A DNA stretch of 64,000 nucleotides from Paragordius varius (GCA_964247055.1 OZ176050.1:7502001-7566000), one strand, 5' to 3'; counted from the stretch's first letter, positions 1-58,800 are shown. Notes: generated from the sequence alone by a model not told the origin. Numbers and translations are program-made.

Positions 1-678
1 CTTTCAAAAGTAATATTTTGTTCTTCCGGATTAAAAGGCCCATTCCGATAAATGTTCAAATTTTGATTTGCTGCATGAGATGAATCTTGATCTAAAAATT
101 ATACCCATTACGATAAACTTGAATAGTATATAACTTTTGTGTTTGTTTGAGATCTATTAAATTAAAAAGGCAAATACCTCATCATGGCTAGTGAGTTGTT
201 GAAATTATCTTTGTTTTCAACAGATCTGCTTTGGCTTAAAAACGTATTGGCAATCTGAACCTTTAATTTTGGGTAAGGTTTCTTAAATTTACAAATTTGA
301 TTATGAAAATTTTTTATGGCTTCAGAACATTCTTCATTGGTGCTAAAAGTAATCAAACTAAATTTTAAATTATTAAATACGCAGTAGATTTATCATTTTT
401 GTCAGTCTTATGTATTCTTTTAATATTTCCAACATTTTCAAATATTTCTCTTATATCATCCTATAATTTTAAATAAGTAAAACTTCCGTCCAAGCTAAAG
501 GTATCAGGTCCACAAATATAGTGGCACTTAATATAAATTAAAATTGTTTACTCATTTCGATGATAATTTTTAGATGGTAAAAAGGATTTGCTTTGGACGT
601 ATGCTTCACACTCGCCTTGGAACATATTTAAATTTAAAATTTGGAAAATGGGTCGAAATACCGAACACTCTAAATCAA
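1..678 (-). CDS. RRM-domain RNA-binding protein, CELF/Bruno- or ELAV-like (partial; continues off the left edge, 5' end uncertain)
   Basis: Minus-strand exons 678(or ATG 625)-552, 526-484, 460-381 and 357-178 are joined by GT-AG introns of 25, 23 and 23 nt. They give ...HRNDATIFVDLIPLAWTEDDIREIFENVGNIKRIHKTDKNDKSTALITFSTNEECSEAIKNFHNQICKFKKPYPKLKVQIA, a complete RRM fold (RNP2 TIFVDLIP, RNP1-like STALITF) most reminiscent of CELF RRM1. A further 24-nt GT-AG intron is likely at 177-154; splicing downstream of it is ambiguous. Confidence 0.75.
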
Positions 679-1337
679 CTGATGATAAAAAATTATTTAA
701 AAATTAAATAAATTTAGATACACTAAATAAATGATTTCTTTCAAAAATTTGGGATTTTAAGGCTTTTTAACCAATTGTTAAATTAATTATATTTTCTGAT
801 GTGGGGTATTTTAATACAAAATACATTACAAATGTAGTTTAGAAATATAGGCTTAAAACAAATTGTGTCATGGGGGGTATTTCAAAATATGCAGCAGACA
901 ATGAACCATATAATTCCCAAATAAGCACAATTATCTACAAATATTGCTAATTATACCTTGTTCATTAATACTGATGTTTTAATATGATAAATTTAATTAT
1001 CTATTAAAAATAATTAGAAAAACATTTATATGTTGTGCATAAAAAATTTTTTAAGTTTTATAAAATATAACTTTCGTATTTCCTCTAACATATATTAGTA
1101 AATGTTTGATATATTGGCTCCATATAGAAAAATATTTTAATAAGTAACACAATGAAGACAAAAAATACTAAAAGACATATTCTGATTGGATATATCAGGA
1201 TTCTCATGATGGTTTTGTTTTTGTACTTTAACAAGCATAAAAAAAATTTAGTTCTGTGGCAATTAGTCGATATCTAACCAAACTTAGCGCACATGAAAAT
1301 TATTTTTGATAAAAGCTAAATGCTCAATAACATATAA

Positions 1338-2392
1338 CACTGTGTTCGAATCGGGGGGTTCCTAACGAAATATATATTCTGATAAGTAAGGTTAATTGTT
1401 TTGCTTTTAGTTGTGGCTTTGCTAGTTTAAGAAATTTAATTAGTGCTGCATATCAGAAAATGGCAAAATTTGCGTACATTTTTATTTTTTGGTGAAAGCT
1501 AAATGCTTATCAAAAAATATCTCTTAAATATAAATATAAGCTATATAAAACAAAATATAAAAAATTGATTTCAAGATGTTGGCTTCCAAGGTTCGAAAAT
1601 TTTTCGCTCTTCTAAAATGGTCTATAAATAAACGCAAAAATATAGAGATTGTGCGATATGATATGCTATATTTGGTATCACCTAAATTTTTTTAAAAAGG
1701 TGCATGTTTGGTCACAAATTTACTTTTTAAAAGTTTTGTTGAAGCGTACTAGCTATTATCTTTAGGTACGATGGAAACGGTATAAAAACGCTTTTTGATT
1801 TTGTAAAAATACCATTTCTATATAATTTGATGAATTAAAATTCTGAGGTAATAGAAATGTTGACCATCATTGAATGATATAAAACATGTGTTTTAATAAT
1901 ATGTTAAAGTGTTTTTTAACCGTTAGAATTCTTCAAACTAGTATGAAGTGCGCTCCAAATAAATTTTGCTAAAAATTTATTTTGTAAAAGTATGCATTTA
2001 AAAAAATGTTTTTAGTCGATTAGAATCTAACATAAAATTAAAAATTTTACTGCGCAATCTATACGTTTTTGCGTTTCTTTTAAAAGGAATAGGCCCTTTA
2101 AAATGGCGAAGAATTGGGAGCTAACATCGAAAAATTAAAATATTGTTTTGCTTATAAGTAGTTATATATTTTAGAGATATTTTTTGGAATGAAGCATTTA
2201 GCTTTGATCAAAAAATTTTATACAAAAAATATGCTTAAATTTGGCCATTTTTTGATGTGACTCACTTCCCGAAAAGTGTAAATAACTTTCTTATAACACT
2301 CATAGGCCCCAAAACCAAAACTCCATGAGATACCTGATATATTTTTCGATCGGAATATATATATTTTATCATGATTTTTTGTTTACACTGTG
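1338..2392. mobile_element. Long-TIR foldback-like element (family D)
   Basis: Two imperfect inverted arms of roughly 450 bp around a short core; termini CACTGTG / CACAGTG (reverse complement). The same arm recurs at ~2650-3165, ~47500-47885, ~50935-51250, ~60600-61057 and 63810-64000. Confidence 0.55.
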
Positions 2393-3502: not shown

Positions 3503-3793
3503 ACGGGGTGTCCAACACACGGCCCTTCAAGACTTCATGTGCGGCCCGCGAAAAATTTGGATTATAATTGCCAATATCCTCACAAAATCTTAGTAAATTT
3601 AACTTTTAAACAATTTTATTTATAAGCCATTTCAATCGGCAAGAACTAGAGGAAATTATTATAATGTGTTTGCATTATAAGCTCTTATGCTTAATAATCC
3701 ATTAAATTATTTGTGAATGCCTCTATATATTTTGAATGCGGCCCGCAGAAGGCAAAAATGAGGCCCACGAAGCCATTATGTTCGACACCCCTG
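3503..3793 (+). mobile_element. hAT (Charlie-like) MITE (family C)
   Basis: Ends (c)GGGGTGTCCAACAC ... GTTCGACACCCCTG with internal GCGGCCCGC motifs; flanks cttaaaac / ctttaaac approximate an 8-bp TSD. CAGGGGTGTCCAA ends resemble hAT-Charlie MITEs. Confidence 0.65.
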
Positions 3794-4336: not shown

Positions 4337-6018
4337 CACTTGGATTCAACACATTCATTTAAGTCCTTCGATTCAAATTGGGGTAGTTAGATACCCCAGG
4401 CTAGTTTAAAATTAAATAAAGTAAAAAATATTGAATAAATTGAGGCCATGGCAAAAGTTTGCACTCACATAACATTAATGAACCGAAATATAATAAAAAA
4501 TATATTCTAAAATACTTACTATTACTTATTCAGATGTATAATCCAAGGGTATAAATTTAGCCATTATGACATGTGAGTATAAACTAAATATATTTATGCA
4601 ATATACCACTTTTTCTGTTTATATCAAAGGTAAAAGTGATTTTAATAAAAAGTAAACTTAATTTTAGGCTTAGAATCCAGTAAACACGCATTTTGGGAAA
4701 TAGTAATAAAAATGGCGTCCAAGTAGTTTGAAACGGAACTTTTTTCCCAAACTATATTATTATTTATATAATTTTTACTAGCGTAAATCTCGTGCTGCTA
4801 TGCAGCCCGAGGAAGTCCTTCGGACTTCTGGGGGGGGGGGGAGGGGTGGTTGAAGTTTGGATTTGAATGGGTCTACCGGTTTTCCGGTACCAGATCACAA
4901 AGTTACATGAGGAATCAGTTTTTAGCGGGTAGCTCCTTATCCAGCAGCTATTCAAAGAAACGCATGACTAAAATTTTTGCCTTTTACCATTAAATGCGTG
5001 GAATCCATATTGAATTTTTACGGTCTCATGTCTAGGGCGAAAAATAGATTTGAAAAATTATTTTTGTGGACTTTGTTTTTTTGAAAAAAATGGTATTTTA
5101 CGGGGGTAGCGGGTAAAAAGAGGGCCTAAATCAAAAAAGCGAGACGACTATGTTCAGCGCGATCAAAAATTAAACAAAATTCATAAAATTGAATGGTCCA
5201 ACACCTCCAAAAAATTGACTTAACCCATTTTTCACACGGGGTAGGCCCGAACTGTGGACCTAATTCCAAAAAACTGCGAAGCTATTGTCGGGGCATTCAT
5301 TAATGATTATATTTTTTCGATATTTGGATTTGATTGGGTTCATCGGTTTTCCGGAAACAGATCACAAAGTTACGTGATTACTCAGTTTTTAGCGGGTAGC
5401 TCCTTATCCAGCAGCTATCATCAAAGAAACGCCTGACTAAAATTTTTGCCTTTTAACAGTAAATACGTGGAATCCATATTGAATTTTTACGGTCTCATGT
5501 CTAGGGCGAAAAATAGATTTGAAAAATTATTTTTGTGGACTTTGTTTTTTGAAAAAAATGGTATTTTACGGGGGTAGCGGGTAAAAAGAGGGCCTAAATC
5601 AAAAAAGCGAGACGGCTATGTTCGGCGCAATCGAAAATAACTAAACAAAAATCATATTTGAAATAGAATGGACCAACACGTTCTCCGGAAAATTGTCTCA
5701 AAGACACGATTTTTGTGGACTTCATTTCCAAAAACAACCTGTTTTTCATACGTGGTGGGCCCGAACTGGGGGCCTATTTCAAAAAAAGGGCGAAGCTATT
5801 GTCGGGACATTTATTAATGATTATATTTTTTCGATATTTGGATTTGAATGGGTCTACCGGTTTTCCTGTACCAGATCACAAAGCCAGCATTTTCCATTTT
5901 TATAAATATATAGATTAGGACAGGAGCATAAGTTTAAATTTATGCCGTTTCTTTCAGTAGTTTTTTAAAAATATAAACTTAATTGTCTGGTTTAGATACC
6001 CCAATTCAAATCGAAGTA
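4337..6018 (+). mobile_element. TTAA/piggyBac-like MITE (family A), older copy split by the Helitron
   Basis: cacttggattcaacacattc...ttcgattcaaattggggtagttagatacccc left end; the consensus resumes after 5914 and ends ...ataccccaattcaaatcgaagta. Termini and TSD are degraded. Confidence 0.7.
4778..5914 (-). mobile_element. Non-autonomous Helitron, copy 1 (inserted in a TTAA-MITE)
   Basis: On the - strand it begins TCTATATATTTATAAAAATGG and ends with a GC-rich hairpin CTCGGGCTGCATAGCAGCACGAG followed by ATTTACGCTAG. Inserted between A and T with no TSD. Interior is ~2 tandem units of roughly 470-510 bp. Confidence 0.85.
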
Positions 6019-9316: not shown

Positions 9317-9345
9317 ATGTGTGTGTGTGTGTGTATGTGTGTGTG
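9317..9345. repeat. (TG)n microsatellite
   Basis: gtgtgtgtgtgtgtatgtgtgtgtg run. Confidence 0.9.
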
Positions 9346-19223: not shown

Positions 19224-21873
19224 ATGGAAGAACAAATTTTTGTCAGTTCTGTAGAATCCTCTGCAAGCAACTACACTTATAACCCATATTTTTACAATTT
19301 CCCTGGTTTTTCTTTTACACATCAAAATGCCAAGGATCAAGAGTGTCCTTCGCATTATGAAACTAATTACCATGAGAAGTACAATAGCAATACTGCTAAT
19401 AATGGAGTGCCATGTGGTGAAATTAATCAAAATATTCAAAAATCTACTAATGACTCCAATATGTACAAATTTACTTTGGCTCATGACTATAGTAACAATG
19501 ATATTTATCATAATGGCCAAAATCACGTTTCAGAGGGTAAACAAAATTCCTCTGGGGATCTTTGTAATGTGAATTGCAACTCATCTCCCTCGGCTCAACA
19601 TCTCACCAATGTTACGCCATATGAGCAGGCAGTACCTGACGATGAACATGCAGAACAAGGGAAAAGTGAACAAAACCCATTAGTTCCAATCAACTTTGAT
19701 TATTATGCAAACACTTTGCTTGGACGTAAGGATGTGTCGTCGTCCATTAACTCTGCTGGTTATAATTTCAATCCCGCTGCTGCTTATGAGGGATATACAC
19801 ATCCCTATTATTACAATTATGGGTATAATAGTAATGTTTCTGGAACAGGAGGATACGATAACTTTTACAATACATCTTTATTAGCTAGCAATGCGCAGCA
19901 ATCATTTTTCAACTCAGCCATCAGCTTGGGTTATGATGCCGTAAATAACGGAACGATCCCAATAGATAATTCGATATTATCGACTGGAACAAACTTAGGT
20001 GTATATGGTTTTGGGCAACACCCGTTTAACTCAGAATGTTTGCAATGGCCATACTGGAATGGTAGTCAAGGAACTTATGAAAACACTCAAATTATGGCAG
20101 ATGGCATGCAGGAAGATCAAGACAATTTAAGCGCAACTCAAACAAATATCTTAAGCAAAACGAAATCGCCTCATACTGAGAAAAAAGCTAACAAAAATTA
20201 TTCTAACCATAGCATGATTTTACATCAACCCTTTTTAACCGCCAGTGAATCCAACAACCCTGATTATCCAATCAACAGTCGAGATAACATTAATTCCTCT
20301 GCACCTCATAATTCAATACTCTCTCATTTGAATCCCATGTCATCCCTAACAAATTTTAAACCAAACGATATATTCGGAAGAAAAGATTTTCCCTTCTACA
20401 ATTTTTATGCAGCGGCAGCGGCTGGAGCAAGTACTTATCCTTTAGCTGCCTGTTGCACTTTGATGAGTAAAACGAAGTGTCAGGAGGATGAATTAGAAAA
20501 TAATTATAGAGAAGAGGGTTGTAACTTAGTCTATAATGAAAAATTCAAAAACGAGGACAAAACCCGTACTAATGGTCTTAATATATCATTTATGGGGTTG
20601 AATTCATCACTGGTTGGTAGTGACGTTTCGTTTTCAAAAACAATGTCTTTGGAAAATTCGATTGACGTATATGGAACGCCAAAGAAAGAAATCATCACAG
20701 GCCAGAAAAAAAGAAATGGTAACACCAAACTGAATGGGAAAACGCTTAATAGAACAGCTGATTTGAATAATAACAGTCGTGTTACAAAATATTCAGATCT
20801 ATACTCCAATTACAAAGAAAAGGGAGTGAACGTCACCCCTACTAAAACGGATAAAACAAATAAATCTTTACTCTCCACCGATTATGGTAAATCCAACAAA
20901 GATAACTTAAGCTGTGCTGATCCTCCTATGCAACAGTCTAGAATGGACCCAAATAAAATGGATACTAGATATCAATCAAACTTATGTTCAGCTGACTGTG
21001 AATTGAATACTACGCATTGTGAATCGATAATTGGCAATGATCCGAAAGATTTGGAGGCTTTTGCAGAGAAATTTAAGCAAAGACGTATTAAGCTGGGAGT
21101 TACACAAGCCGATGTGGGAAACGCCTTAGCCAAATTAAATATCCCGGGTGTAGGGGCTTTATCACAGAGTACCATATGTAGGTAGGCTTTAAATAAGCAA
21201 ATTAAATCTTTATTTAATAAGTTGATAAAAAAGGTACACAAATAAGAAATTAATTCATTAGCTAAGTAAGGCATGTAGCATACTTTTTTCAGTGATTTTA
21301 AGCCAACTCTCGAAAATTATATAAATGATGAATACTCTTTTGTAGATTTGAATCTCTTACCCTAAGTCATAATAATATGGTGGCGTTAAAACCAATCCTC
21401 CAAGCCTGGCTCCAAGAAGCCGAAACTGAAGCTATCAATGGTTTCGGAGAACTGTTAGCAGCATCCTATAATACCAACAATGCTAACAGTAGCATAATCA
21501 GTAGTATAAATATAGCCAAGCATAAAAATTTTCATAGCATGAAAAACGAGACGGGAAACTTGAACAATAATGATCACGGGAAAAGTACAACATATTCCAA
21601 TGCTCTCCGTTTTGAACAATCCAGTAGAGATGGAGCAAGTACTAAGCTTGTCTTGAAAAATGGTGTCAATCCCGCGAACAAAAAATTGGAAAAGGCGAAT
21701 AAACATGAAGGAACGCAACAGAGCACATCTCATTCTGATACAATTACGAATAACCTCACATATCAACCACATGTTATAGCGACAGAATCGGCATTAGGCA
21801 TGACTCTATCCAATTATGAACAATATTTCGGTAATGAACATTAATCAAATATTTCTATTTTATGTTAAATTTA

Positions 21874-21911
<38 letters not shown>

Positions 21912-22478
21912 TTAGCTTATTACAACGGTGCCGATCAAACATCCAACAATCCAAATATTAATAGCGAAATGAAAGATAAAAATTTCTTTGGGTACTCAGA
22001 AACTCCGTCTATGCCAATTCAAACAACATCACCTTTGTTGTCTGAAAGTAGATTGCCGGATTGCAATGATTTGTGTAATCCCAGTTACGATTTCCATGTA
22101 AATCATCCCACTATCCCTTCTAATAACAGCTATACCAACAAAACCAAATCATCATCCAATAAAACGTTTTCCTATGTTCCCAACAAAAAAGAAAGTAACC
22201 CAATGATTGCGGATAACTCATCTTCTCAGGGCACAACAACCAGTCCCAACGCTTTAGATGCCATTAAAAGGAAACGCACTTCAATAGCAGCACCTGAAAA
22301 ACGATCGTTAGAAGCTTACTTTGCTGTGCAGCCCCGACCCTCGGGAGACAAAATTAGTCTTATAGCGGAAAAACTTGACCTGAAAAAGAATGTGGTAAGA
22401 GTATGGTTTTGTAACCAAAGACAAAAACAGAAGCGTATGAAATTTTCGGCAAACAACAAAGGAATTGATCTTTTATGA
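19224..22478 (+). CDS. POU4: Class IV POU homeodomain transcription factor (Brn3/unc-86/acj6 family), ~1001 aa
   Basis: Exons 19224-21181, 21346-21830 and 21916-22478 (3006 nt, in frame; GT-AG introns of 164 and 85 nt). POU-specific domain DPKDLEAFAEKFKQRRIKLGVTQADVGNALAKLNIPGVGALSQSTICR|FESLTLSHNNMVALKPILQAWLQEAE and homeodomain KRKRTSIAAPEKRSLEAYFAVQPRPS...VVRVWFCNQRQKQKRMK are diagnostic of POU4. A splice acceptor at 19216, just upstream of the ATG, suggests an additional 5' exon that I could not place. Confidence 0.95.
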
Positions 22479-32210: not shown

Positions 32211-32438
32211 GAATGAAAAATTTTAATACAATATTTGTTTATAATTTAGAGTCGGGTATAGAACTTACAAAAAGATATAATGAAAAAAGCTTTAAGGCTA
32301 AAAACTATCCCAAATGTTATCACGTATAAAATATGTAAAGTAATGAATAGTTACACAAAAATTTTTGGGCATTGGACTAAATGCGCTCAGCTTCATCCAA
32401 TCATTGTAAATAATCATGTGTGAAAATTGAAAATCAAG

Positions 32439-35400: not shown

Positions 35401-36317
35401 AGGCAATTTGTCTCATCTTGGCAACGATTACAATGACAAACATTCTGGAACCAACTATTATTACAATAGCACTACTGGTAAAACCATAATTATAATTAAA
35501 CGCCTTAAACCTCATTAACGGGAAATGTGGCTCATATATTGTGGCATTTTTTAAAAATAAACGTTGTCTTAATACAATACCTAGCGGTTGTATCTAAAAA
35601 CTAGATAAATGTTTTATATTCTAAAAAGGGGATGAATTTGCAGGAGTTTATTAATTTAATGCTCATTCTGAGCAGGGTATACTGTATTTAAAATAGCGAA
35701 AATGAAAACATAAAGCGCTTTTTACTTGATATCATATATGAATAGGTTTAACCCCTTCACACGATTATGATGAAACATCATCCACACATGGGATAAGTAA
35801 CGCCTTGTTAAATGGCAACAGGGAAATTGGTGAAGAAGAAATTCTTGAAGACGATCCGAATGAACCACGGTATAAGAACAGAAAAGATTATTTAAAGCTT
35901 TTATATGATTTTTATAATATAAAATTTAGTTTTGTTAATCGTTTTTTATATAGGTTAAATTTTAGATAGTTTCAGATTAATGTTTTACCTATTTTTTATG
36001 GATTCTGCATAAAATTTTATTTTTACCATTACGCCTTAACGTTTTTATGGTAATTTATTTCGTAATTTTTATAAAATTTCGTATTTTTAAAAATATAACT
36101 TTGTTCCTATTTAATAATGTATCTATGTGGATTTAGATATTGCGTATGTCAACAAGTTAGTTATGGAGAAATGGTGGCTTGCGATAATCCAACCTGCCCT
36201 TATGAATGGTTCCATTATGCTTGTGTCGGTATAAGTCAACCACCGCGTGGAAAATGGTTTTGTCCGGAATGTAGTGTTACTTTTACACAAATCAACGCTG
36301 TTCAACCAACCTTTTAA
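32439..36317 (+). CDS. ING3: Inhibitor of growth protein 3 (NuA4/Tip60 subunit, PHD finger), ~379 aa
   Basis: Exons 32439-32531, 32555-32801, 32825-33073, 34503-34547, 34796-34843, 34887-34964, 35403-35477, 35746-35869, 36137-36317 (1140 nt, in frame). N-terminus [19 protein letters not shown]...[32 protein letters not shown] is the ING3 signature. C-terminal [37 protein letters not shown]...WFCPEC is an ING PHD finger. Middle low-complexity exons were chosen on splice sites and phase. Confidence 0.93.
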
Positions 36318-37559
36318 CCCCATACTATTTATATTTTAAATTTTGTAATATATCTATTTATATAAATTGTGTGTTTAGTGAATAAATTATCAATATTTGT
36401 TAACAATAAATGTCTATTTCCAACCTATAATTCAATATATATGAAATAAAATTGGTATTTTTTTCTGGTTTAAGTATGGTCAATCCTGTTAAATGATAGG
36501 ATATCATTTTCATGGCACTTAGCGATTACTGTTGTAGGATTGTAACAATGCAGTATAGTCTGGTTTATCATTGATTGATTAAAACTCGTAATTTTGGCCA
36601 AATCACCAAGTAAATTGTACATTTGTAAATTCCAGAGCAAATATTATCGACGTATAACTAAGAAAGTTTGGCTAAAAATTAAATTGTATTTATTTTTAGA
36701 TAAAAGGGATAACCTGTTGATGCCTACTATGATACATGGATATATATATTTATATACACTATGTAATATAAATCAAGATATAAAATTTAGATTTTCAAAA
36801 CTTACTCAATAAAAAGAATTTTTTTAATTTTACAAAATAACCCATAATATTTTATAATTCAATATGGGGAAAGACACAGAGGGAGCAAAATAGCTTGATC
36901 AAATAACAGTGTATAAACCAAGAATTAAAGCTAACGGTACACATATAGCTTTGTACTAAATATAATTATAATGTATCGCCTAAATTACCGGCCTAGGACT
37001 AAGGAACCGTAAAATTTATTCTTTACTACATAAAACTTTCTTTACCACGAATTTAAATATCGATAATTATATATCTATAAGGTATCATATTAGACGTATC
37101 CCCATCATACGCAACTGAGCAAGTGTCACTGAACCAGCATTTAATATATGGAAAAGCAGCAAGGACGTCTTTTCAGTGGCGACTCGAGTATGCTACACCT
37201 CTTTCTTGATACACCTTGATAAAAAAGAAAAAATATGATAATGTGGCAAATTCATTGGTTATTGTAGAATTTTGTCACAATAACTTTATAATTTGCAATT
37301 AGTGTTTACTTTATTTATAATACCAAAATTTGACTTAAAAATGGTACATTATTGTAAAGAAATACTTCGACAAAAAATGTAAACGTATGATAAATTAAAA
37401 AATTTATATTTATAAAAATAATTGTTTAAAATAATTTTAAAATAATATTTAAATTTATTATTTTTTTAAATTTAACCGTATTACTGCATATGTTTTTCGT
37501 TCTACTTCAATATCAAAATGTGATTTGGTTCGTATGTCAATTGTAACTGCGTCCGTTAA

Positions 37560-40500
37560 ATGATTCTTTTAGATATTAAGAACAAAGCTTTGGAAGATTT
37601 ATTAATATTAAAGTTTAATACATTTTTGGAAGGGTATTATATTATATATTTGTAGTCTAAAATCAGAAAAATCCGATGTCATTTTATCAGGTAATTTAAT
37701 TTTATATGTGTTTTAGATTTTGATGGTGTTATATACCATATATCGAATTCAGACAATGATAAAACAAAAATAATGGTGATAATTCATTTAATTTTTTTAG
37801 GTTAGTATCTCAATCAAGTATTATAACGAACTTTGTAAACATGGTTTAAACAAGGTATAATTTGTCTTATTTTAGTATTTGAAAAATGAATATGGATCCT
37901 TATATTCGACCAAGTCCGAGAATGGTATATTTTTTTAATAATTTGGAATTTACATTTATCAATAACATATAAATGACTCATTTCCAATAATAGGTTATGA
38001 TGTTTCACTCATTATGGATTTGAAATCGCTAACAGATAATTTGGCAATTCAAATATCTCAATTTCAAAGTTCCTCAGATGCAAATAATATCCCTCCTGAC
38101 ACCAATTCATTAATTGATATGAAAAATCCACTGACTACCAATCCTAAAAACTCTGAATGCCAAAAATTACTAAAACTTATCCACAAAGTTGCAATGATTA
38201 AGCGTGCCTGTTTTGGTTGCCTTTTTGTCCCATACTTTCTCCATTTAGATTATTTGAATTCATCTAATGATAAAACATTATCCTCTAAAATTAATTCAAT
38301 CACACCTATAAGTTTTAAAAGTGATGAGAACATTCATCATCATACCACCACAGAAAGGATGGCAAATGGCAATACTTTACCACAAAAAAGGTAATATAAA
38401 TATTTTTTTGAAGCTAATTTGCCATTATTAACACTTGGATGCAACACATTCATTTTAGTCCTTTGATTCAAATTGGGGTATTTAAATACCCCAGGTCTCT
38501 TTAAATTTAAATTCTTTAAAAAATATGGAAGGAATCCAAACTATGGCAAAATTTTGCAGTTATATAACATAAATAAACCGAAATAAATAAAAAATTTTAT
38601 TCAAAAATACTTGGTATTACTTATTTTAAGTTAAAACTGAAAGGGAAAAATCTTGTCAACGTAACATGTGTCTAATGGTAAAATTAAAAAATAATATACA
38701 AAATAACCCGCTATTTCTATTTCTATCAATGTTAAATGTGATTTATAAAAAATAAGCTTTCATTTTACCCTTAAAATTAAACGAAGACGATATTTTGCAA
38801 AAATTGTGTAAAATTAAAATGGCGTCCAAGTAGTTTGACATGGAACTTTTTTTTCAAAACAAAATTTTATCAAGATATTTTGGCATATTTATATAATTTT
38901 AATTAGGATAGAAGCATAAATTGGGACCGTTTCCTTCAGTAGTTTTTTAAAATTTTTAATATAAATTTAGTCTGGGGTATTTAGATACCCCAATTTGAAT
39001 CGAAGTGTTAATTTTAAATGTAATATTGTAGCCCTCTTTTCCAAAATTATTCTTTTTGAAAAACAGCACCTATAAACCAATTAGCTCATTCTGATAACTT
39101 TTTCCCACTAAATATTTTAGTAACAACCATTGTATGCATTGAATAATTTTCCACAATTTATTAATTAGTTTGTGGGCAATTTTTTTAAGAGATACCCATG
39201 AGACAAAGCAAAAAATATTAGGTGATTATTTTAATTTTCCAAAAATTTGTACATGATATTCAATATACTTATAATATTTAATAATATTCTACATTAAATT
39301 TCCAAAAAAGGATATGGACATTATGACTTTTATATTTTTCCCGCAAATGGGCACTTCATAAGCGCAGCTCCACTATTATAAAGAAGCGAGCGGTTAATAA
39401 TTACTGGCAGATCTATATTTTTTGTAGATATATAATTTATAATCTATATTATAACTAATTTTTGTGTTAAGTATTAATCAGGATTCGAAATGGCAGGCAG
39501 TTATATGGATATAAAAATAAATGAAATAGAGTTCATTAATTCCTTAAAGGCACATTATTATTACTATACCTATCTATGTGTGTACAATGTTATGTGTCAG
39601 TCATGTTTGTTGTATTCAACAAATTTTTTGCACAATACAATAAAAACAATGTGTCATTAATGTACTCTTTTGTCATAAAAGAAGGATTCATATTATGTAA
39701 TAATTAAACGGAGAAAAAAAATCAACAAAGGAATATAAACTGGATTAATTTGTGGTGGTTTAACGCTTTTTGTATTATATATTTTTAATTACATGAGATT
39801 TGAAATTATTTTTTATATTTTGAGTTATACGGTTTGTTTTTAATTCATTTAAGACTAAATTAATATAATTATAAAAATTAATAATTATATAATTTTTCCC
39901 ACGTTATTTTAAACGAATTTTAATAAATTTTAAATGATTCTCATTTCATATATTTCAGATTAAAAGTTTCGGAGCTAAGTATATCATTAGAGAATGCTTG
40001 TTTATAAAATTTTATATTTTAAATATAAATTCATCTGACGCAATCCTTTGTGCATAATAAATTTGCGATATTTTAACACTGTGTCTCAATTAGGGGTCTT
40101 AAATTTTAAAAGCCTTTTTCCAGAAAAATGCTAATATTTTTTTGTAAACAAGGACATCTGTTTTTTATTGAAAAGTTTAATTAATTTTGTTCAGGGCCCC
40201 AAGATTTGGCACAGGATGTAACATGTAATTTAAAAAATTAATTGATCGTAATATCCATATAATTTTAAAATTTAGCTAATCTTTTTTTTACATTCCTTCG
40301 ATTTAATCAATAATGAATGCATTACACATGTTAAATATGTGTTAATGTACAAAAGCTTCATCAAACATTTTCTTAAAACCAATTCCACCTAATATAACTA
40401 ATGGTTTTTAGGATAAATGAAAAGTTGGAATGTGCAAACATGAATATACGTTAATCATAAAGTATTTAAACCCATTAAACTCAATTTATTCATTTAAAAT

Positions 40501-43500
40501 AAAGAAAATATGTGGTGCAAAGGAACCCGATTTGCAAATGTTGAGTTTTATTGGTTTTTTTGCCTTTAAAATTGTTCTTTAAATAGTATTTATGTTATTA
40601 CAGCTGTCATATGCATTAAAAATGATTTTAGTTATAAGACCGTTAAATTTTTGGGCATACGATTTGGGGCTTAAACATTTTTTAATTTTATATTTTTCGG
40701 TTCCTTCTTATTTTTATGAGATTTTATGGAATTTGTTAATAAAAATGTTTTACTAGCTAATACATCCGTTTATAATTTACTTATTACCCTAGTTAATTAT
40801 TCCTTGATGACAAACGAATGATTTAAATTGTTAATTATTTTATATAAATACATATTATATTACAGGAGTTTGTTTTAGATGATATAATATACGCATATAA
40901 ATGAAAAATTGGGTCTTTTTATCTTAAAAAAAATATTTTTTTGGAATAATCCGGCCAAAATATATTAAGCAATATCGTGGTAATTTCCTTTTTAAATTAA
41001 GTATTTAAAAATGCTACACTGCATATTTCAGATAATTATTTTGGAAATAATTTCTTCTGTTACAAATATTTTATCCACAAATAGGCAGTGTTTTATTTTT
41101 TTTTAAAGTTATTTTTAAATTGATAGTTTTTCGTAGATAAAAATAATATCCTAACGCCATCGATTTGATATCTAATACTCGAAGCGGTCGTTTTATCTTT
41201 TAATTTGGGACTGATTTTCTATGACTTTGTTAATTATATAAAATTTAACCAGTGGGCTTTTTTTGCCTAGGCTTTAAGTCAATAAAATTGTATTTTCATT
41301 AATCATTTGTTGTTTTATGGATCACAATATAAAACACATACATTTAAATTTTTTTGATAAATGATATACTAAGAATATAAGGTCTTGGTTGTAATATTTT
41401 TATTAAAAGAGTTAAATTAATAAGTTATTATGATGTTGTTCTGTCATAATTAAATAAATACGATATTTTTTTCGTATCTTTTTTAAATTTTATAATTTTT
41501 CTTAGCCATTTACGTGAGAATCAGAAGCATATCAGCGCTGATCGTTAAATATTAAATAATTTTATATTGGATTTTTGTTGAAAGACTTGTAGAGTGTATT
41601 AATTTATTTATTACAAAACAACTCCTTTTACCGTTAAGTTAATTTTTTTTTAATTTAAAAAATGGAATATAAGATGGCTAGGAACTTAATAAGACTGATA
41701 ATTTTTACTGATCTCTTTTATCTCCATAATAATTTTTTATTTCTTGATGTGTTCTTGATTCTTTATTAATGTAGTCTCTTAACATAGTCCTTCCCCAAAA
41801 TAAATGCTGTTATTCTTTAAATGTCACCCTAATAAAAACGGTTAATAAATATTTAAGTTGCAATTAATTGAAGAGAATTATTTTACAGTGAAGAGTCATA
41901 TTATGGATTTAAAAAATATTTTATGAAAAAAATTATTCATCCATTAAATTTTTTGTGCACTCACTTCGATTCAAATTGAGGTATTTAAATACCTCAGACT
42001 AAATTTGAGTTGTATTTTTTAAAAACTACTGGAGGAATTGGTCCCATTTTAAATTTATGCTTCTATCCTAATAAAAATTATATAAATATGCCCAAATATT
42101 TAAATAAAATTTTGTATTGAAAAAAAAGCATGTCAAACTACTTCGACGCCATTTTTATTTTATAAAATTTTTTGCATAATATCGTCTTTATTTAATTTTA
42201 AGGGTAAAATCAAAGCTAATTTTTTATTTAAATTACATCTAACATTGATAGAAATAGAAAAAGCGGTTTATTTTGTAATATTTTTCAATTTTACCATTGC
42301 ACACATGTCATGTTGACTAAATTTTTACCTTTCGGTTTTAGCTTAAAATAAGTAGTAATATTAATTATTTTTAAATAAATTTTTTTATATATTTCGGTTT
42401 ATTAATGTTATAAGTGCAAAATTTTGCCATGGTTTCCATTTCTTCACATATTTTTTAAAGAATAATTTTGAACAGGCCTGGGGTATTTAACTACCCCGAT
42501 TTGAATGAAGGACTAAAATGAATGTGTTGTATCCAAGTGTTAAAAAAACTCTTTTTCATTATATTTTCCATTTTTAATTTAGTGTAACGGATGCAACTGT
42601 CAAATCACCTACCACAAATCAATCAACTAATAATATCAATCATGTTGCGAACGAAGGTACTTTTATTTTGTTTAAAAGTACAAAATTTAATTTGAAAAAA
42701 GTTGGTAACTAAATTTAATAATTTTTCAAATTTCCTGACAACATTAAGCTTATAAAATTTTTTATTTTTATAACTACGTTATAATATTATTTGCCGGTCT
42801 TTAATTTGCAGCCAAAAAAGTTATGTATAACAATTTTTTTCACCATAAAGAAAATTACATTCATGCCGTCAATATTTTTTGTCAAACATTTTCTTATATA
42901 GGTTCATTGATTAATTTTTTCATTTTTGGACTAATATATATGTATATCTGTAAGTAATAATACTATTTTTAATTGTATTTACTTGGATAAATTGTTGATA
43001 TATCAGTTAAAAGAAGGTTAAATTTGTGTATTACAAAATCCTAATTTTATTCTTCCTACATTCAATATACCACTTCATTAAAAATTTTTTTAGAATCACC
43101 CAATAATAATACTTTGAATGAGAGAACATTGTCCAATCGTCAATCTCTTTCAACGGAAAATAAACCAGTTTATTCTTCTCCATTAGTAAATGGTGGGACA
43201 ACCAATGTCGACAATCACACTCAAGAAGACATATTATCAGCAAAGTTAAATAGGGAAGAAAGCAATGTAACTCAATTGGATCCCAGCAAAACGCCTGAAC
43301 CCCTACTTATTAATTACCGTGAAAATGAAGCTATGTAAGTTAGTTTTGCGTCGTTTTTTTAAATAAAAAGATTAATGTAATATTTAATTATATTAAATAA
43401 TATAAATTTTGAATGTTGACTATAAATTAGGGATTAAAACCGGAATAGTTGTTTTAGAAGCAAATTAAAAAGTTTAAGCTTATTTGGAAACAATTAAACA

Positions 43501-45430
43501 GTTTTGGGGCCGCTTATTACATTTTAAACGTTTTCAAACGGTGTAATATACATCAATTTTTTATATATTAATTTTTTATATTATTGGATTTACGCTGAAA
43601 TATTATTGTTCTTGTAATTATGTAAATTAAGCAATAAATATTAAAACCTAAAAAACATACTTGTAATATTATTAGAAAATTGCCGATACTATTTAAAGTG
43701 TTAAATTCCTTTTTTTCTGTTCTCTATTAATATAAAAACTTTCCTAAGAACATAAGGCAGCAGTTAACAGAATAAAATAAATATTCTGCTTTGGCCTATC
43801 ATGCCTATGGATTTCAAATAAAATTGGGATTGAAATCAAGATTATTTAAGGCTAGTTTTTATATTAAAAAGCACAGAAAATAACAGTAAATAGGACATTA
43901 ACGAGTTAAATAGTCTCACTAATTTTCTTAAAAATATTTCAATTTTTTTATTTTCTTTTTTAATTTACATTCAAGAAAGATTACTTTTAGGAATCAAAAA
44001 TTCTTGTTTTAAATAAATATAATTATTACTGAATTTAAACAAGTCCAATTAATAATTTTGGTGTTAGCTTTATTTTAATGCCTTTTCCATTTATTGAAAT
44101 AAAGGGTATTATTTTTTAGAGTTTTAAGTAAATAGAACATTGTAAAATTTTCAACCTTTATATGTTTAAAGTGTTTTTCTATACCAGTATAATAATTTTA
44201 TAATTTTTGGGGAATAAAACATAATAATATCCACCACAGACGCTAAAAATGACTCTTGAGCCTGGAGAAAAACGAATCCGACTATCTTTTGTCTAATATA
44301 TAAATACACAAACTGTTATGTTAATTTTAAGTTATTTTATTATTTCTTAATGGTTTTATGGGTGTTAGGTATGTTGATATCAAGGAAGATCGGTTAACCA
44401 TTGTATTCAGCACACTCTTTTTGGACGAGGAGGACACTATTATTGGAAAGATATTTTTGCAGGTAAAATATTTTGTGTCACATATTATGCTATCAAAAAT
44501 TATATAGCAAAACATGATCAGAATTAAGACTTTTTTCTAAAAAAAGAATACCATATTTTTTAACCTTAATTTTTTGACATGTGTATATCGTTTTGAGTTG
44601 TTGATTAATAAATAAGGGATAAAATGGAAATAGATTAAACATTATCATCTCTTATAGCGAATTCAATATAGTAGGTAATATAAAAAATTAAGGATAAATG
44701 TGGTTGTATATATATAAAATATTATTTTACTTTTTTTTGAATAGGTAAATAATAAGTTTACGGTATTTAATATTATTTTAAAAGTAATTTACTCTTATAT
44801 TTTTTCTACAGGAATTTAAGGAGGGCAGAAAAGCTAGTCAAAATGCACCACACATTTTATTTGGTACCGAACCGCCACGTGAATTTTTATCACGCGGGAT
44901 TGAAAAAACGAGCCCAAACATGGGCTACATAACATTTGGTATACATATATATTTATTTTCCAGAAACTTACTGTTTAAAATTAGATAATTATAATTTATA
45001 ATCAGGGTATTAATTATATTTGTGCAATCAATTTTATATAATTAATAATTAATTATATACAAGCTATTGTTAAGACCCTAATTCTTATTATATTATTTAT
45101 TACTGTATATATATTTTAGTATTGTTTCCGCGCCATACCTCACCACAAAACAGAGAAAATACGGTGGATTTGCTTTTCTCTTTCCGAAACTATTTCCATT
45201 ACCACATAAAATGTTCTAAAGTAAAATTTGCTGAAGAATCTGTTTTTCATATTAAAACATCTATAATTGATTTTATTTAACACAATGTTTTTCAATTTTT
45301 AGATCTATCACGATAATTTTTTTGTTATGTATGTTTATATTAGGCATATGTACATTCCCGCATGCGAACAAAAACTAGTGATTTTTTGAAAATTTTGAAT
45401 CGGGCCAAACCTGACAAAATTATGTAATTT

Positions 45431-45464
<34 letters not shown>

Positions 45465-46517
45465 CATATTCTTAATAATACGATAATATTTTTGTCATCC
45501 GCGAATATTCAACTATTATTACTTCAATTTGCTATATTTAAATTTCGGAAAATATTTTAACAGTCTAACTTATTTATAATATTAATTTTTAACCAATTAT
45601 CCAAAATCATCATAAGTTTTGGATACATTTAAACATTTTATATTTATTCGTCGTTTTCTATATAAAACCTTCGCTCTCAAACGGTTTAACGATAGAATAT
45701 ATTCTTAGCTTAATGAATTAGTTAAATAAAAACTAGTTATACGCGTTAGAATATCTTAAATATCGCTTACAATTTAGAGCTCGAAGATTGAGTGAAAATG
45801 TTTCCAATATGCCTCGCAAATCGCTACATTTAGATAATTGGGCATAGTATATTTTTTCTTCCATAATATATCGCGCTCTTATATAATTCATTTCAAATGA
45901 AAAACTTAATATTTGCATAATTATTATTTGATTAATGTTCGCGTTTATATTTAGTAAATAATTGTTTCATATTTACAATAATTTTTTGCATATGGAATCG
46001 TTATAATTTATAGATTTTGACATCGCGCAAAAAATTATATCGCTTATCTCCATCTTTTACTTAACAATAAATGTTAATTTAAACCTTTTACCCCTTATTA
46101 TTAACATTAATTACATGATAAACTTAAAAAAATTGTAAATTATATTTTTATATACATTAACATTATATCTCATTTTGTTATATGTCGTATACAATGAACT
46201 AAGTATCCGATATTATTCTTATATTATCATATATTTTAATTGATTTTAATGATAAATTTTACCCTTAAGTCGTCTTCAAAATCTCAATAATTTATTTTAA
46301 TATATATATATACATATATTGTAGAAAGGGCCCAAAACATTTTACTAATATGATCAGTGCTAAAACACAATCCCAACGAAGCATACCTCAATCAGTTACA
46401 GAATCTTGTGGGGATCATATTGCTGGCAATCGTAATAAGCAAAAAATAATGTCAAATAATAAATTAACCAATTCAAAATTACTGGGAAAACCACCTGTTT
46501 CAATAAATCATTACTGA
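37560..46517 (+). CDS. ARPC2: Actin-related protein 2/3 complex subunit 2 (p34-Arc) with large insertions, ~525 aa
   Basis: Exons 37560-37633, 37656-37690, 37717-37775, 37801-37854, 37876-37924, 37994-38390, 42583-42656, 43094-43334, 44369-44462, 44812-44938, 45120-45220, 45344-45423, 46325-46517 (1578 nt, in frame). Motifs: [120 protein letters not shown]. The last exon is less certain; an unspliced stop lies at 45425-45427. Confidence 0.93.
38432..39007 (+). mobile_element. TTAA/piggyBac-like MITE (family A) in ARPC2 intron 6
   Basis: TTAA on both sides, terminal CACTT, subterminal inverted repeat TTCGATTCAAATTGGGGTATNTAAATACCCCAG; 576 bp. Confidence 0.85.
41962..42539 (-). mobile_element. 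TTAA/piggyBac-like MITE (family A) in ARPC2 intron 6, inverted relative to the 38432 copy
   Basis: cacttcgattcaaattgagg start and ...gttgtatccaagtg|ttaa end; roughly 85% identical (by eye) to the reverse complement of 38432-39007. Confidence 0.85.
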
Positions 46518-51847: not shown

Positions 51848-51898
<51 letters not shown>

Positions 51899-53211: not shown

Positions 53212-54293
53212 TCTATATATTTATAAAAATGGAAAATGCTGGCTTTGTGATCTGGTACAGGAAAACCGGTAGACCCATTCATATCCAAACATCGAAAAAA
53301 TATAATCATTAATGAAGCCCCGACAATAGCTTCGCCCTTTTTTTAAAATAGGCCCCCAGTTCGGGCCCACCCCGTGTGAAAAACGGGTTTTTTTTGAAAA
53401 CACAAGTCCACAAAATTCGTGTCTTTGAGACAATTTTCCGGAGAACGTGTTGGTCCATTCTGTTTCAAATATGATTTTTATTTAGTTATTTTCGATTGCG
53501 CCAAACATAGTCGAGTCACTTTTTTGATTTAGGCCCTCTTTTTACCCGCTCCCCCCGTAAAATGCCACCTTTTTCAAAAAAACAAAGTCCACAAAAATAT
53601 TTTTTTAAATCTCTTTTTCGACCAAGACATGAGACCGTAAAAATTCAATATGGATTCCACGTATTCCCTGTTAAAAGGCAAAAATTTTAGCCAAGCGTTT
53701 CTTTGATGATAGCTGCTGGGTAAGGAGCTACTCGCGAAAAACTGATTTCTCATGTAACTTTGTGATCTGTTTCCGGAAAACCGGTGAACCCATTCAAATC
53801 CAAATATCGAAAAAATATAATCATTAATGAAAGCCCCGACAATAGCTTCGCCCTTTTTTGGAATTAGGTCCCCAGTTCGGACACACCCCGTGTGAAAAAT
53901 GGGTTAAGTCAATTTTTTGGAGAACGTGTTGGACCATTCAATTTCAAATATGATTTTTGTTTACCTATTTTTGATCGCGCCGAACATAGTCGACTCACTT
54001 TTTTGATTTAGGCCCTTTTTTTACCCGCTACCCCCGGAAAATGCCATTTTTATCAAAAAAAACAAAGTCCACAAAAATTATTTTTTAAATCTATTTCTCC
54101 CCCAGGTAAACAATAAATTAGTATGCATGCACCGTTTTAAGATTCCTATGAGATCATAGCTATTAAATAATTTTTCGAAATAATCCACATATGTAGATCA
54201 TTTTATTGTCCCTTTTTTCAAATAACCCCCCCCCCCCCCCCAGAAGTACGAAGGACTTCCTCGGGCTGCGTAGCAGCACGAGACTTACGCTAG
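53212..54293 (+). mobile_element. Non-autonomous Helitron, copy 3 (inserted in a TTAA-MITE)
   Basis: 5' TC terminus, 3' hairpin plus CTAG, at an A^T target (ccaaaa^tatctt). Internal tandem duplication and a long poly-C tract about 50 nt before the 3' end. Confidence 0.88.
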
Positions 54294-54400
54294 TATCTTG
54301 ATAAAATTTTGTTTTGAAAAAAAAGTTCCATCTCAAACTACTTCGACGCCATTTTTATTTTATAAAATTTTTGCAAAATATCGTCTTCATTTAATTTTAA

Positions 54401-54971: not shown

Positions 54972-55867
54972 TTAAGGGTAAAAATGAAGCTAAATTTTAT
55001 TATAAATTACATCTAACATTGATAGAAATAGAAAAAGCGGTTTATTTTGTATTATTTTTAATTTTACCATTTGACACATGTCAAGTTGATGAAATTTTGA
55101 CCTTCGGTTTTAGCTAATATTTAATATCAAATATTTTTGAATTAATTTTTTTATATATTTAGGTTTATTAATGTTATATAAGTGCAAAATTCTGCCATGG
55201 TTTCGATTCGTTCCATACTTTTTAAAGTATTTGATTTTCAGGCCTGGGGTAGCCAACTACCCCAATTTGAATCGAAGGACTAAAATGAGTGTGTTGCATC
55301 CAATTGTTAAAAAAGGTGATGATTTTGCATTTACGTATTTAGCTAATTCAAACATGTCATGTTGTATTCATAAAAAGTATTATCAAGATTAAATAAACCT
55401 TTTTTTTTAATTTTGCATCAATTTTAAATAAGTGCTTTAATTTGCACCATATTTTTAGAAATATTTGAATTAGAACAGGCCTAAGGTCGCCGAAGAATCC
55501 AATTTTAATAGGATGACTGTAAACGTGTTATGTTATAATATTTTTAAGAGAATCAATCATATCACTTTGGGTTTAAAAATATACTTAAAGACGCGACAAA
55601 AAATTTAAAATATAAGTTTAATAAAAGTTTAATAAAATGTTTTTTGGATTGCATTTAACTTCAACGAAAAATTTAAAATTGTAATCTAAATTTCTAAGAT
55701 TGAGCTCAATTGTTATCATTACCCTGAAATGGTAATAAAAAATATAAGTTTAAAATATTTAGTTTGCTATTTTTATGGAATATTTTGTCGGTAGCATTTC
55801 CTTCATATTCATTATTATATTTGTTATCCCATGTCATTTTACCTTGAAAAGTCACAAGCTTGAGTGA

Positions 55868-58800
55868 ATGATCGATGATTGGCCTATATCAACCAAGGTA
55901 AATTTAATTCGCTTAAAATTAAGTCACATAAATTGATCAAAAAATTTTCTACTCTCGATGATCAATTGTCAAATACCTTAAAAGAATTAGGAAGCTTTAT
56001 TGGCAAGAAAGATCCTGATCGATGCACTCGAGTAGTGACACAATTGAGATACTTGCAATCTCGTATTTTACAAATTATCGCTGATATTTATGAATCATCT
56101 TGCAATATATTTTTATCAAACGAGCCCGAACTATTTTTAAGACTTTTTCGCACAAAATATCCAAATGACCTTAATCTGATACCCATAAGCCGTCAAAATT
56201 TATTAAATTCCGAATTAACTTATGATGATAATGTTAATATATTTAACCTTTATACCACAAATACTGGTACATTTAGCAGTTCATTGGTATATCCCGGATT
56301 TATTTGGTTTGCAGCCGAAGTATGATTAGTTTAATTTTCAGTGTCTGGCGTCCGGCTCCTTACCAAGAAATATGCAGCGCGGAACAGATTATGAAGGCCT
56401 AACTGTTTTGGCAAAAGAATTTGTTTTATCAATTGAAACTTTGCGTAAAACATTAAAATCCCAATCCCATTTACCTAGGTCATTGTGTTCTGAATTTAAA
56501 GTTTTTAGATAACATTTATACATATATAGATTCAAAAAATTCTTATGGAGTTTGATAGAATATTTGCTGATTTTGAATACAGGTATGATATGTCTTTATT
56601 TAAATTACTTTAATCTTTTCCAATATTTTCATTTTATAGATATGTTTCTTTTATGGCACCAATTAAAACGGCAAAAGAAGCATTTTACCACCAACTTTTA
56701 ATTGTTCACAACCTGGAAACGCTGACCAAGTATTATTAATTTTAAAGGAAATATTATAAATGCATAAGCCGTAAACACAAATTTAGGAGTTTAATTGTAG
56801 TCTGTTAACAAACAAAAAATTTTTTCCTTAGGATAATCCAAAGCAATAATATTATTTTTTTGTTGAATCATTAATACTTTGTAGGATTAAAGTTATTTAA
56901 TTGATGAATATGTAATTAAGTTTTTTAAATAGGTAACTGTTAATCAAATTTGGAAAAATTTTCTATTAATTTTGTTTATATTTAGTGGTGTTGAAAAGGG
57001 ATATTTTACCATTTCTCAAATCGAAGAAGTGGATCCTGGTTTAATGATAACATTGCCACGACTAGCATTATTCCAGTAATACAGAATCTGTTAAATTATT
57101 TATTTTATTATTTTTTATTTGAGATTATAAGGATGCCATATAATCATATTATATTTGGTATTTAATCTCTTTACAAAAGTCGTATATAATAAAGTCACTA
57201 AATTTTATTAAACCACAACTTATGATTTTTTATGTTTTACTGTCATTATACAATTTAATATATTATATGTAATTAGCAAAAACTTCAAAGCTTTGTTCAA
57301 TTACCAAAATACATCAATAATTATTACATTTGTATACATTTTTTTAAAAACAGGTTTTGTAAACAATTTTTCAAGTTATAGTTAATGTTTGTTAATATTT
57401 TAGAGCATTAAGACTCCTTCCGAATGATGGACCATTGTATACCCTTTGTTCTGCTGATAGCGAGGATACAGAATCAGATTTTAAGATGTTTGCTCCGTAT
57501 AAAAAAATTCTTTTGCGAATTCAGTAAACATTACACCTTTGAATAATAACTAGGGTTTTATTTTTGAAAGGTCTAAATATAACAACCGGTCTGACCACTT
57601 ATGAATATATAAAATCCTAAGCACTTAAAATAAACTAAAAATAAATTATGTCAAGCGTTCAAATTGGTTTTATAGTTCAAATATACATTTTTTTTACATT
57701 ATTGAATTAAATACCACAATTTTATATCAATTTTAAAGACACGTGGTAAAAACTTGTTCAAAAGTTTTATTATTTTTTAAGCGGTCATAATCATGAATAT
57801 TAATGACTTGTTATTTCCTAATTAAAATAATTACTCTTATTTTTAATTTAGCTCATTTGTTGAAACACTTTCACCATCGAACGTCCTTGAACTAGAAAGG
57901 ATGTTATGTGATTGTAAATTGGATCCAAACAACCAACGCAATAATAATAATAATAATGTACAGTTGTTTTTGGCTTCAGATAATCTTTTTGATACTAACT
58001 GCAATAAAGAAGATACAATTATATACATCAATGAAAGTAAGGCCAACTCAATAGTTTGTTTATCGACAAAGTCCGATGTTAAAGATAAACCAGTTACAAA
58101 ATTAAGAACAAATTGCAAATATATCAATAGATTACGATGTAATCGATATATAACGACAATGCAGTTAGCAACGGATGGCACTCCAGTAATTGACAAAAAA
58201 CATTCCGATGCTAATGTTGACAAGTGTGGAAACATTCAGCACAAAAGAAAATGTTTACCCTTAGTTTTATATAGAAGGTTAATGTGTTACAATGCATATA
58301 ATGTTCGCTATCAAATGTTTAAAAGACGGAAAAAGCTAAACAATGTTGCACCTTTAAATCACCAATTGCCATTCTTCCCATCCCATCATTTACATGTGAA
58401 AAGATGCAAAAAACAAATGAAATATAAAAAACGGTTAACAAATAATATGACTGTTATGTATGATCCACATGAAGATTTGACCCATCGACTTTTTATCTGT
58501 ATATCTGGTAATATCTGTTTTTATAATTCAGATTATTTATATTTGACACTGCGCTTTTTTTTTATTGATGGGAAATAATTTATTTAATAACGAAATTACT
58601 TTATAGAATTCTATAAAGAGCCGTTTTTAACTCTTCTCCAAAACAGATTTTTAGGAAAATTTTGGGATACACCTTTTTGTTTTTTTTGTAATCTATATTG
58701 ATTTTGACAATGACATTGACATTTGTTATGTAAATATTTGTCCTATTTTCTCTAATTTTCTTAACTGATTTTTAATAATAATAATAATATTTTTTATACA

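Follow-up and report, generated by a model that had tools for sequence, protein, structure and literature searches.

A 64 kb stretch of the Paragordius varius genome (GCA_964247055.1 OZ176050.1:7502001-7566000), referred to below as the window, was analyzed with regard to very short introns in four of its genes. The sequence has a GC content of 26.3% and contains zero Ns. The four genes are an RRM gene on the minus strand, which extends from 625 to 1 and runs past the window edge, and three genes on the plus strand, namely ING3 (32439-36317), ARPC2 (37560-45427), and a FYVE/LST2-like gene (55868 to ~60048). A first-pass annotation had proposed 13 GT-AG introns of 21-29 nucleotides (nt) in these genes, which are called micro-introns here. 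In a coordinate check, all 13 segments were found at the proposed positions, each beginning with GT, ending with AG, and measuring 21-29 nt.

Once the 13 segments were removed, the reading frames of all four genes were continuous; the unspliced frames all met stops. The length was not a multiple of three in 11 of the 13 micro-introns, and the remaining two, 154-177 and 37855-37875, both contained an in-frame TAA. Retention of any of the 13 would lead to a frameshift or a stop. One further candidate, at 92-118 in the RRM gene, had not been listed in the first-pass annotation.

With this candidate included, 14 of the approximately 26 introns that could be defined in the window fell within 21-29 nt, and zero were of 30-56 nt. 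The other introns in the genes with micro-introns measured 57, 69, 123, 181, 267, 349, 476, 1034, 2672, and ~4900 nt. The coexistence of micro-introns with long introns in the same genes, as claimed earlier, was therefore borne out over a range from 57 nt to ~4.9 kb. The micro-introns were grouped at the 5' ends of the genes, and the introns downstream of them were ordinary or long and contained repeats.

Micro-introns of ARPC2 and ING3

The ARPC2 gene carries four micro-introns, all on the plus strand and all with GT and AG ends, and the support for each of them was rated as strong. The first (37634-37655, 22 nt) follows nucleotide 74 of the coding sequence (CDS) in phase 2, the second (37691-37716, 26 nt) follows CDS nt 109 in phase 1, the third (37776-37800, 25 nt) follows CDS nt 168 in phase 0, and the fourth (37855-37875, 21 nt, with the in-frame TAA mentioned above) follows CDS nt 222, also in phase 0.

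The spliced N-terminus aligned with a solved ARPC2 structure from the PDB without gaps over residues 1-82 (E = 5e-28), with all four junctions inside the aligned part. It was likewise colinear with 15 orthologs obtained in an exhaustive protein search. Removal of the third micro-intron produced the conserved motif KIM|VSISI in both the structure and the ortholog alignments, so that the restoration of IM|VSISI stated in the first-pass annotation was reproduced. The top matches of the exhaustive search for ARPC2 had at most about 50% identity, and none was near-identical.

Intron positions were compared by mapping three annotated animal orthologs of ARPC2 onto their genomic loci. The Caenorhabditis remanei gene (locus L001) has introns at CDS nt 74, 168, and 222, with lengths of 47, 251, and 49 nt, respectively. 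A fish gene (L004) has introns at CDS nt 74, 109, 222, and 268, with lengths of 2068, 228, 1269, and 85 nt, and a further animal gene (L005) has introns at CDS nt 74 and 222, with lengths of 34 and 189 nt. All four ARPC2 micro-introns thus matched ortholog introns of 34-2068 nt to the CDS nucleotide and phase, for which the chance expectation is about 2e-8. Because of this match to the introns of C. remanei, the fish, and L005, all four can be assigned, by comparison of sequences, to ancestral intron positions.

The next intron of ARPC2 (37925-37993, 69 nt) follows CDS nt 271 in phase 1 and uses the sole donor and acceptor pair that keeps the frame. It corresponds approximately to the fish intron at CDS nt 268, given an indel of one amino acid (aa). 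An intron of ~4.9 kb with uncertain boundaries (~38393 to ~43270) precedes an intron of 1034 nt (43335-44368), which was placed by tblastn of orthologs, and introns of 349 nt (44463-44811), 181 nt (44939-45119), and 123 nt (45221-45343) follow. The downstream exons were located by tblastn and then assembled; the spliced C-terminal half was open and matched the Pfam family P34-Arc (2.9e-64). Several phase-compatible acceptors are present in the ~4.9-kb intron, and the exact exon 6/7 boundary is ambiguous.

Two side observations were made in this part of the gene. Exon 6 contains, at 38050-38190 on the plus strand, an insertion of ~45 aa (...KLLKLIH) that was found in none of the aligned orthologs. 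Moreover, two open reading frames (ORFs) resemble the ...IHYRDDETM segment of ARPC2, one at ~38330 and one at 43306-43335, of which the downstream one is the better fit.

Both micro-introns of ING3 have a length of 23 nt, GT and AG ends, and support rated as strong. The first (32532-32554, plus strand) follows CDS nt 93 in phase 0, and the second (32802-32824, plus strand) follows CDS nt 340 in phase 1. The spliced N-terminus aligned without gaps with human ING3 (PDB 8cok, residues 1-102; E = 7e-23), and this alignment covered the first junction. Removal of the second micro-intron yielded LEADNAGITEILE, with the junction at ADNA|GITEIL, which was near-invariant among nine aligned orthologs, in agreement with the earlier statement that conserved residues are restored at this site. 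The sole variable residue of LEADNAGITEILE in the nine orthologs was the one preceding GITE (A, S, or R). The PHD finger of ING3 was confirmed by Pfam.

Among 993 ING3 matches, the top one came from the horsehair worm Gordionus sp. m RMFG-2023, with 278 bits and 49% identity, followed by the next at 252 bits. The similarity to Gordionus reached into a linker that is otherwise non-conserved. The first two introns of the Gordionus gene (locus L006) are located at CDS nt 93 (phase 0, 281 nt) and CDS nt 340 (phase 1, 25,747 nt). Both ING3 micro-introns therefore coincided with Gordionus introns in exact position and phase, with a chance expectation of about 2e-5.

The ING3 introns of Daphnia and Takifugu (loci L007 and L008) are located at CDS nt 100 and 364, not at 93 and 340, and the positional support for the ING3 micro-introns consequently comes from Gordionus alone. 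By this comparison, positions 93 and 340 appear to be common specifically to the window and the nematomorph Gordionus. The Daphnia and Takifugu positions are 7 nt and 24 nt, respectively, farther downstream. A possible origin of this offset is that the introns slid, or were lost and gained anew, in the nematomorph branch.

Farther downstream, ING3 contains an intron of 2672 nt (33074-35745, plus strand) that is in phase 1 on both sides and whose GT and AG ends join the ...RVNQ(G) exon to the LTPSHDYDE... exon. Undetected small exons may lie inside it. A further intron of 267 nt is located at 35870-36136.

In total, homology of position and phase was found for six of the 13 micro-introns, at CDS nt 74, 109, 168, and 222 of ARPC2 and CDS nt 93 and 340 of ING3. 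Two further loci that were looked up proved to be transcript contigs lacking introns and contributed nothing to the comparison. Judged by their orthologs, these six hold ancestral or lineage-shared intron positions, and this position-verified set, as compared at the sequence level, is the contribution of the window.

Remaining junctions, chance controls, and splice signals

The RRM gene contains four of the proposed micro-introns, all on the minus strand. The first (527-551, 25 nt, GT and AG ends) connects RRM strand beta-1 with the ATG exon (625-552), with moderate support. The second (461-483, 23 nt) gives AWTE|DDIRE, gapless against TWSEKDLRE of CELF1, and the third (358-380, 23 nt) rebuilds the RNP1-like KSTA|LITF in the RRM alignment; the support for both was considered good. 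The Pfam RRM_1 match (6.4e-8) and CELF1 RRM structures spanned the junctions of these two, and the RNP2-side and RNP1 motifs were both rebuilt.

The fourth micro-intron of this gene (154-177, 24 nt, GT and AG ends, in-frame TAA) is required for the ORF to go on, and reading through it leads to a stop 5 codons on. No homology was found across its junction and its support was rated as weak; the first-pass annotation had itself listed this segment as the least certain of its introns. The additional candidate at 92-118 on the same strand has a length of 27 nt, phase 1, GT and AG ends, and an in-frame TAA. Combined with 154-177, it would define an exon of 35 nt and a frame open to the left window edge, according to hand reading only.

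In the FYVE/LST2-like gene, three micro-introns on the plus strand had been proposed. The first (55898-55923, 26 nt, GT and AG ends) links an ATG exon of 10 codons to an exon of 132 codons that itself lacks an ATG. The case for this intron consists solely in the need for a start codon, and its support was rated as weak. The second (56320-56341, 22 nt) joins the 132 codons of 55924-56319 to an exon of 53 codons, with good support. The third (56501-56529, 29 nt) has moderate support, consisting of frame continuity only. Two longer introns of 57 nt (56583-56639) and 476 nt (59480-59955) follow, the latter splitting the FYVE domain.

The spliced FYVE domain matched Pfam with 8.2e-22, so the domain assignment of the first-pass annotation was upheld; its LST2 label was not confirmed. 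This label, the associated argument from the junction AAE|CLASG, and the presumed product of removing 56320-56341, WF(A/G)AECLA(S/A)GS, are based on human ZFYVE28.

Two control scans were performed in which the window was compared with its reversed sequence. The first was directed at GT..AG segments (18-35 nt) that connect two ORFs, each of 25 codons or more; 325 such segments were counted in the window, compared to 328 after reversal. In the stricter scan, limited to segments of 21-29 nt that interrupt read-through, the window was again approximately equal to the reversed control, except for very long flanking ORFs. A single join between at least 100 and at least 50 codons was observed in the window, and the reversed control contained none. 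The join at 56320-56341, between more than 100 stop-free codons and 53 codons, satisfies these thresholds and is presumably the one counted. The joining of ORFs was accordingly discarded as statistical evidence for micro-introns, given that the window counts equalled those of the reversed control, and since the pattern is no commoner than in the control, the case must rest on homology and gene structure.

Base composition separated the micro-introns from their surroundings. The interior GC content of the 14 micro-introns (the 13 and the candidate 92-118) was 10.6%. The flanking exons had 32.7% (P = 3e-18), and ten longer introns had 20.1% (P = 1.4e-5).

All 13 micro-introns and the candidate 92-118 have the termini of U2-type GT-AG introns. 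At the 5' end, (G)|GTA was present in 10 of the 14, and positions +4 to +6 were without consensus; this is the 5' splice signal reduced to GTa that is typical of the ultra-short class of animal introns. The lengths of 21-29 nt likewise lie below the limit of 30 nt that bounds the same class, in metazoan nuclear genes that include ARPC2 and ING3 and have a POU4 gene as a neighbor. At the 3' end, T was found at -5 in 13 of the 14 and at -3 in 10 of the 14. Three of the 13 micro-introns end in AAG, consistent with the several AAG endings described earlier. The longer introns of the window end alike, with GTA...TAG.

The sequence CTRAY occurs in none of the 13 micro-introns, as had been stated, nor in the candidate 92-118. 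YTRAY was present in 8 of the 14 at variable distance, and A was mildly enriched at -8 to -10 (6-8 of 14). All three micro-introns with a length divisible by three, including 92-118, contain an in-frame stop, a sample too small to test. A scan of positions 1-37440 against Rfam revealed no small nuclear RNA and no other family.

The remaining content of the window is sparse. Approximately five genes occupy the 64 kb (about one per 13 kb), and intra-window repeats make up 15% of the window and 24% of the ~4.9-kb ARPC2 intron. Judged on the window, the earlier description of the genome as not compact is therefore appropriate. Short introns forming the majority within a compact genome are not what was observed here: 14 of about 26 introns were below 30 nt, the others ranged from 57 nt to ~4.9 kb, genes were few, and repeats were present.

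A POU4-type gene is located at 19224-22478 on the plus strand (Pfam Pou 1.7e-15, Homeodomain 1.3e-18). Its first exon comprises 653 codons, and its POU-specific domain is separated from the homeodomain by a long linker of low complexity. Its introns are ordinary only, with lengths of 164 nt (21182-21345) and 85 nt (21831-21915), and it has no micro-introns. (TA)n microsatellites were noted at 21885-21905, inside the 85-nt intron of POU4, and at 45440-45470, right after the ARPC2 stop codon. A repeated ORF of ~70-85 aa (MSQRH.FCGL...FINDYIFS.FG.EWVYR...) is present in three copies, at 5693-5905 (plus strand), 28438-28695 (minus strand), and 53221-53433 (minus strand). These copies, for which no Pfam match was obtained, presumably belong to a family of dispersed repeats or transposons.

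Interpretation and alternative explanations

Taken together, the segments are very probably true spliceosomal introns of the U2-type GT-AG kind, reduced to 21-29 nt, near the physical minimum, in an ecdysozoan lineage of the nematode/hairworm branch that is most likely nematomorph. The gapless ortholog alignments, shared positions, and AT-rich interiors constitute comparative evidence far beyond chance, in contrast to the bare joining of ORFs.

Several points weigh against this interpretation. GT..AG segments joining ORFs were equally frequent in the reversed control sequence. The LST2 orthology received no support from Pfam (N-terminal 213 aa), a word-based homolog search, or the ESM Atlas, which returned noise only. 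None of the sequencing runs that contain the stretch is recorded as RNA, and its words are almost entirely missing from six others with the same species label, whose RNA nature is a guess. A near-identical, transcript-derived protein was absent from the protein collections in the searches for ARPC2, ING3, and the LST2-like gene, and the word-based searches for ARPC2 and the LST2-like gene returned no match. Finally, the proposed branch point is based on 14 sequences and a weak positional enrichment of A.

The alternative that survived best is that several of the 13 introns have been mis-called, representing chance GT..AG segments in genes whose true structure differs in its exons or splice sites or terminates earlier. 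Since joins are as common in the reversed sequence, junctions without ortholog support may be wrong or bounded elsewhere, and this could apply to 154-177, 55898-55923, and 92-118, and partly to 527-551 and 56501-56529. The segment 154-177 links only short, non-conserved tails, and the stop reached after 5 codons of read-through could be the C-terminus of an isoform; the exon upstream of 55898-55923 comprises just 10 codons. The same explanation is inapplicable to the six introns of ARPC2 and ING3 and to the two that rebuild the RRM, and the join at 56320-56341 has no counterpart of its kind in the reversed control. Mis-calling of several introns is hence regarded as a real possibility, on balance somewhat doubtful; it may affect some of the seven junctions that are not backed by orthologs.

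A further alternative accepts the introns as real and denies that they form a discrete class, viewing them as the lower tail of one broad length distribution in which the gap between 29 and 57 nt is a small-sample effect. The small number of definable introns and the similar splice-site ends of short and longer introns are compatible with this view. It is contradicted by the concentration of 14 of the ~26 introns within a span of 9 nt, with none of 30-56 nt, and by the difference in composition from the longer introns, and it appears improbable. Doubt may nevertheless attach to the discrete class as such, which was seen in one window. The earlier inference of a spliceosome with two modes was supported as far as real spliceosomal-type introns beside long ones are concerned, with six shared positions, and its discrete ~23-nt mode is based on ~26 introns of a single window.

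Excision by a non-spliceosomal route, either at the DNA level, as in the internal eliminated sequences of ciliates, or by another type of RNA processing, would fit the length of 21-29 nt, which is shorter than what is believed to be workable for most animal spliceosomes (PMC13644364). It is extremely improbable, as the boundaries are of the GT...AG and not the TA...TA type, ordinary spliceosomal introns of other animals occupy homologous positions, the terminal motifs are common to longer introns of the same genes, and Dicyema and the myxobolids, with intact U2 and U2AF machinery, have documented GT-AG introns below 30 nt (PMC13644364). Assembly or insertion errors, or pseudogenes carrying small insertions, are hardly credible, given that random insertions would not all be GT..AG, ~90% AT, and placed on conserved intron positions and phases, that 83-92% of sampled 31-mers of 32300-38200 were present in two runs (of unspecified type, apparently DNA), and that the exons are still strongly similar to functional orthologs.

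If the micro-introns are indeed spliceosomal, they would be removed by intron definition with minimal signals, namely a 5' site reduced to (G)|GTA and a T-rich 3' end that terminates in (T/A)AG. The branch adenosine would probably come from the loosely A-rich positions 8-10 nt before AG, with no consensus of the CTRAY type, as in nematodes. Because the longer introns share the GTA...TAG ends, one spliceosome probably serves both size classes, and it would then operate in two very different size regimes. In ING3, ancestral introns, which measure 281 nt and 25.7 kb in Gordionus, would have collapsed to 23 nt, with neighbors in the same genes staying kilobase-long and containing repeats.

The lower length limit of animal introns has long been taken as ~30-40 nt. 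If the interpretation is correct, the window would provide the first ecdysozoan case of introns below 30 nt and the first case of tiny and kilobase introns in the same genes of a repeat-rich genome. It would also offer a natural system for the study of the determinants of minimal intron length and of the pairing of 5' and 3' sites across 21 nt.

There are also consequences for annotation. Common defaults set the minimum intron at ~21 nt in aligners and ~39 nt in gene finders, and shorter gaps are read as deletions or forbidden. Failure of gene predictors on micro-introns is plausible, and under such defaults genes like ARPC2, with four micro-introns in the first 222 coding nt, would be truncated or missed. 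Missed micro-introns would lower BUSCO scores and inflate inferred gene loss in Nematomorpha; the low BUSCO completeness and the "rampant gene loss" reported for the phylum could in part be an annotation artefact.

Comparison with known systems

Introns below 30 nt are generally considered absent from animals, and among 51 genomes they were reported only in myxobolid myxozoans and in Dicyema japonicum (PMC13644364, September 2026). In these short introns, the 5' site is limited to GTa and the A residues that precede AG are weak, and more lineages with such introns were predicted; Nematomorpha are unmentioned in that work (PMC13644364). The list of known short-intron groups in the first-pass annotation named dicyemids and omitted the myxobolids (PMC13644364). 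These two parasitic groups were the only animal exceptions below 30 nt in the literature searched.

For the Gordionus genome, a GC content of 26.93%, 63.79% repeats, and 71.6% BUSCO completeness have been published, the first value being close to the 26.3% of the window. Together with the top ING3 match, the similarity in the linker, and the two intron positions shared with Gordionus, this GC content points to a nematomorph as the host; at only 49% identity, it would belong to a genus other than Gordionus or to a deeper branch. A dicyemid host, considered at first, was rejected in view of the top ING3 homolog and the two shared intron positions. Introns are unmentioned in the Gordionus genome paper and in a comparative preprint on nematomorphs and mermithids, and no paper on nematomorph intron length was found in the literature searched, a search that did not include the genome paper of Cunha et al. 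2023.

The micro-introns of the window support the existence of a third animal lineage with introns below 30 nt, which would be set apart from the other two by the coexistence of tiny and kilobase introns and by a repeat-rich genome. A third independent origin of such introns in animals, in the nematomorph lineage and with miniaturization decoupled from genome compaction, appears likely.

Nematodes, as a sister phylum, resemble the present case in their splicing style. Caenorhabditis introns (~47-50 nt) have a T-rich tract right before AG and no known branch consensus, CTRAY being absent in both, and the C. remanei introns at the positions of ARPC2 micro-introns 1 and 4 measure only 47-49 nt. 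In contrast, nematode introns stop at ~40 nt, the mode found here is about half of that, and position -3 is mostly T and not C.

Ciliates such as Paramecium (~25 nt) and Stentor (15-16 nt) share the similar length, the very high AT content, and in-frame stops in introns with lengths divisible by three (PMC5014332). They are not animals, however, and essentially every intron is tiny in Paramecium and Stentor (PMC5014332).

Dicyema japonicum (~26 nt; PMC13644364, PMC6736024) is likewise a parasite with animal GT-AG introns below 30 nt at conserved positions. It differs in its reduced genome and body plan and in that short introns are the rule, whereas here they are one of two size classes. Its lineage is also unrelated to the present host, being spiralian and not ecdysozoan.

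The myxobolids (Henneguya salminicola, Thelohanellus kitauei, Myxobolus spp.; PMC13644364) also have GT-AG introns of ~20-30 nt in animal genes, conserved intron positions between conserved exons, and a 5' site reduced to GTa. As in the window, a weak A is found upstream of AG without a clear branch consensus, and short introns adjoin short introns (PMC13644364). The myxobolid genomes are compact (~75 Mb in Henneguya), with a median intron of 22-27 nt (PMC13644364). In the window, by contrast, the genes with micro-introns also carry repeat-containing introns of 1-5 kb, and there is approximately one gene per 13 kb. The host is an ecdysozoan and not a cnidarian, and the 3' end of its micro-introns retains a T-rich, TNTAG-like signal.

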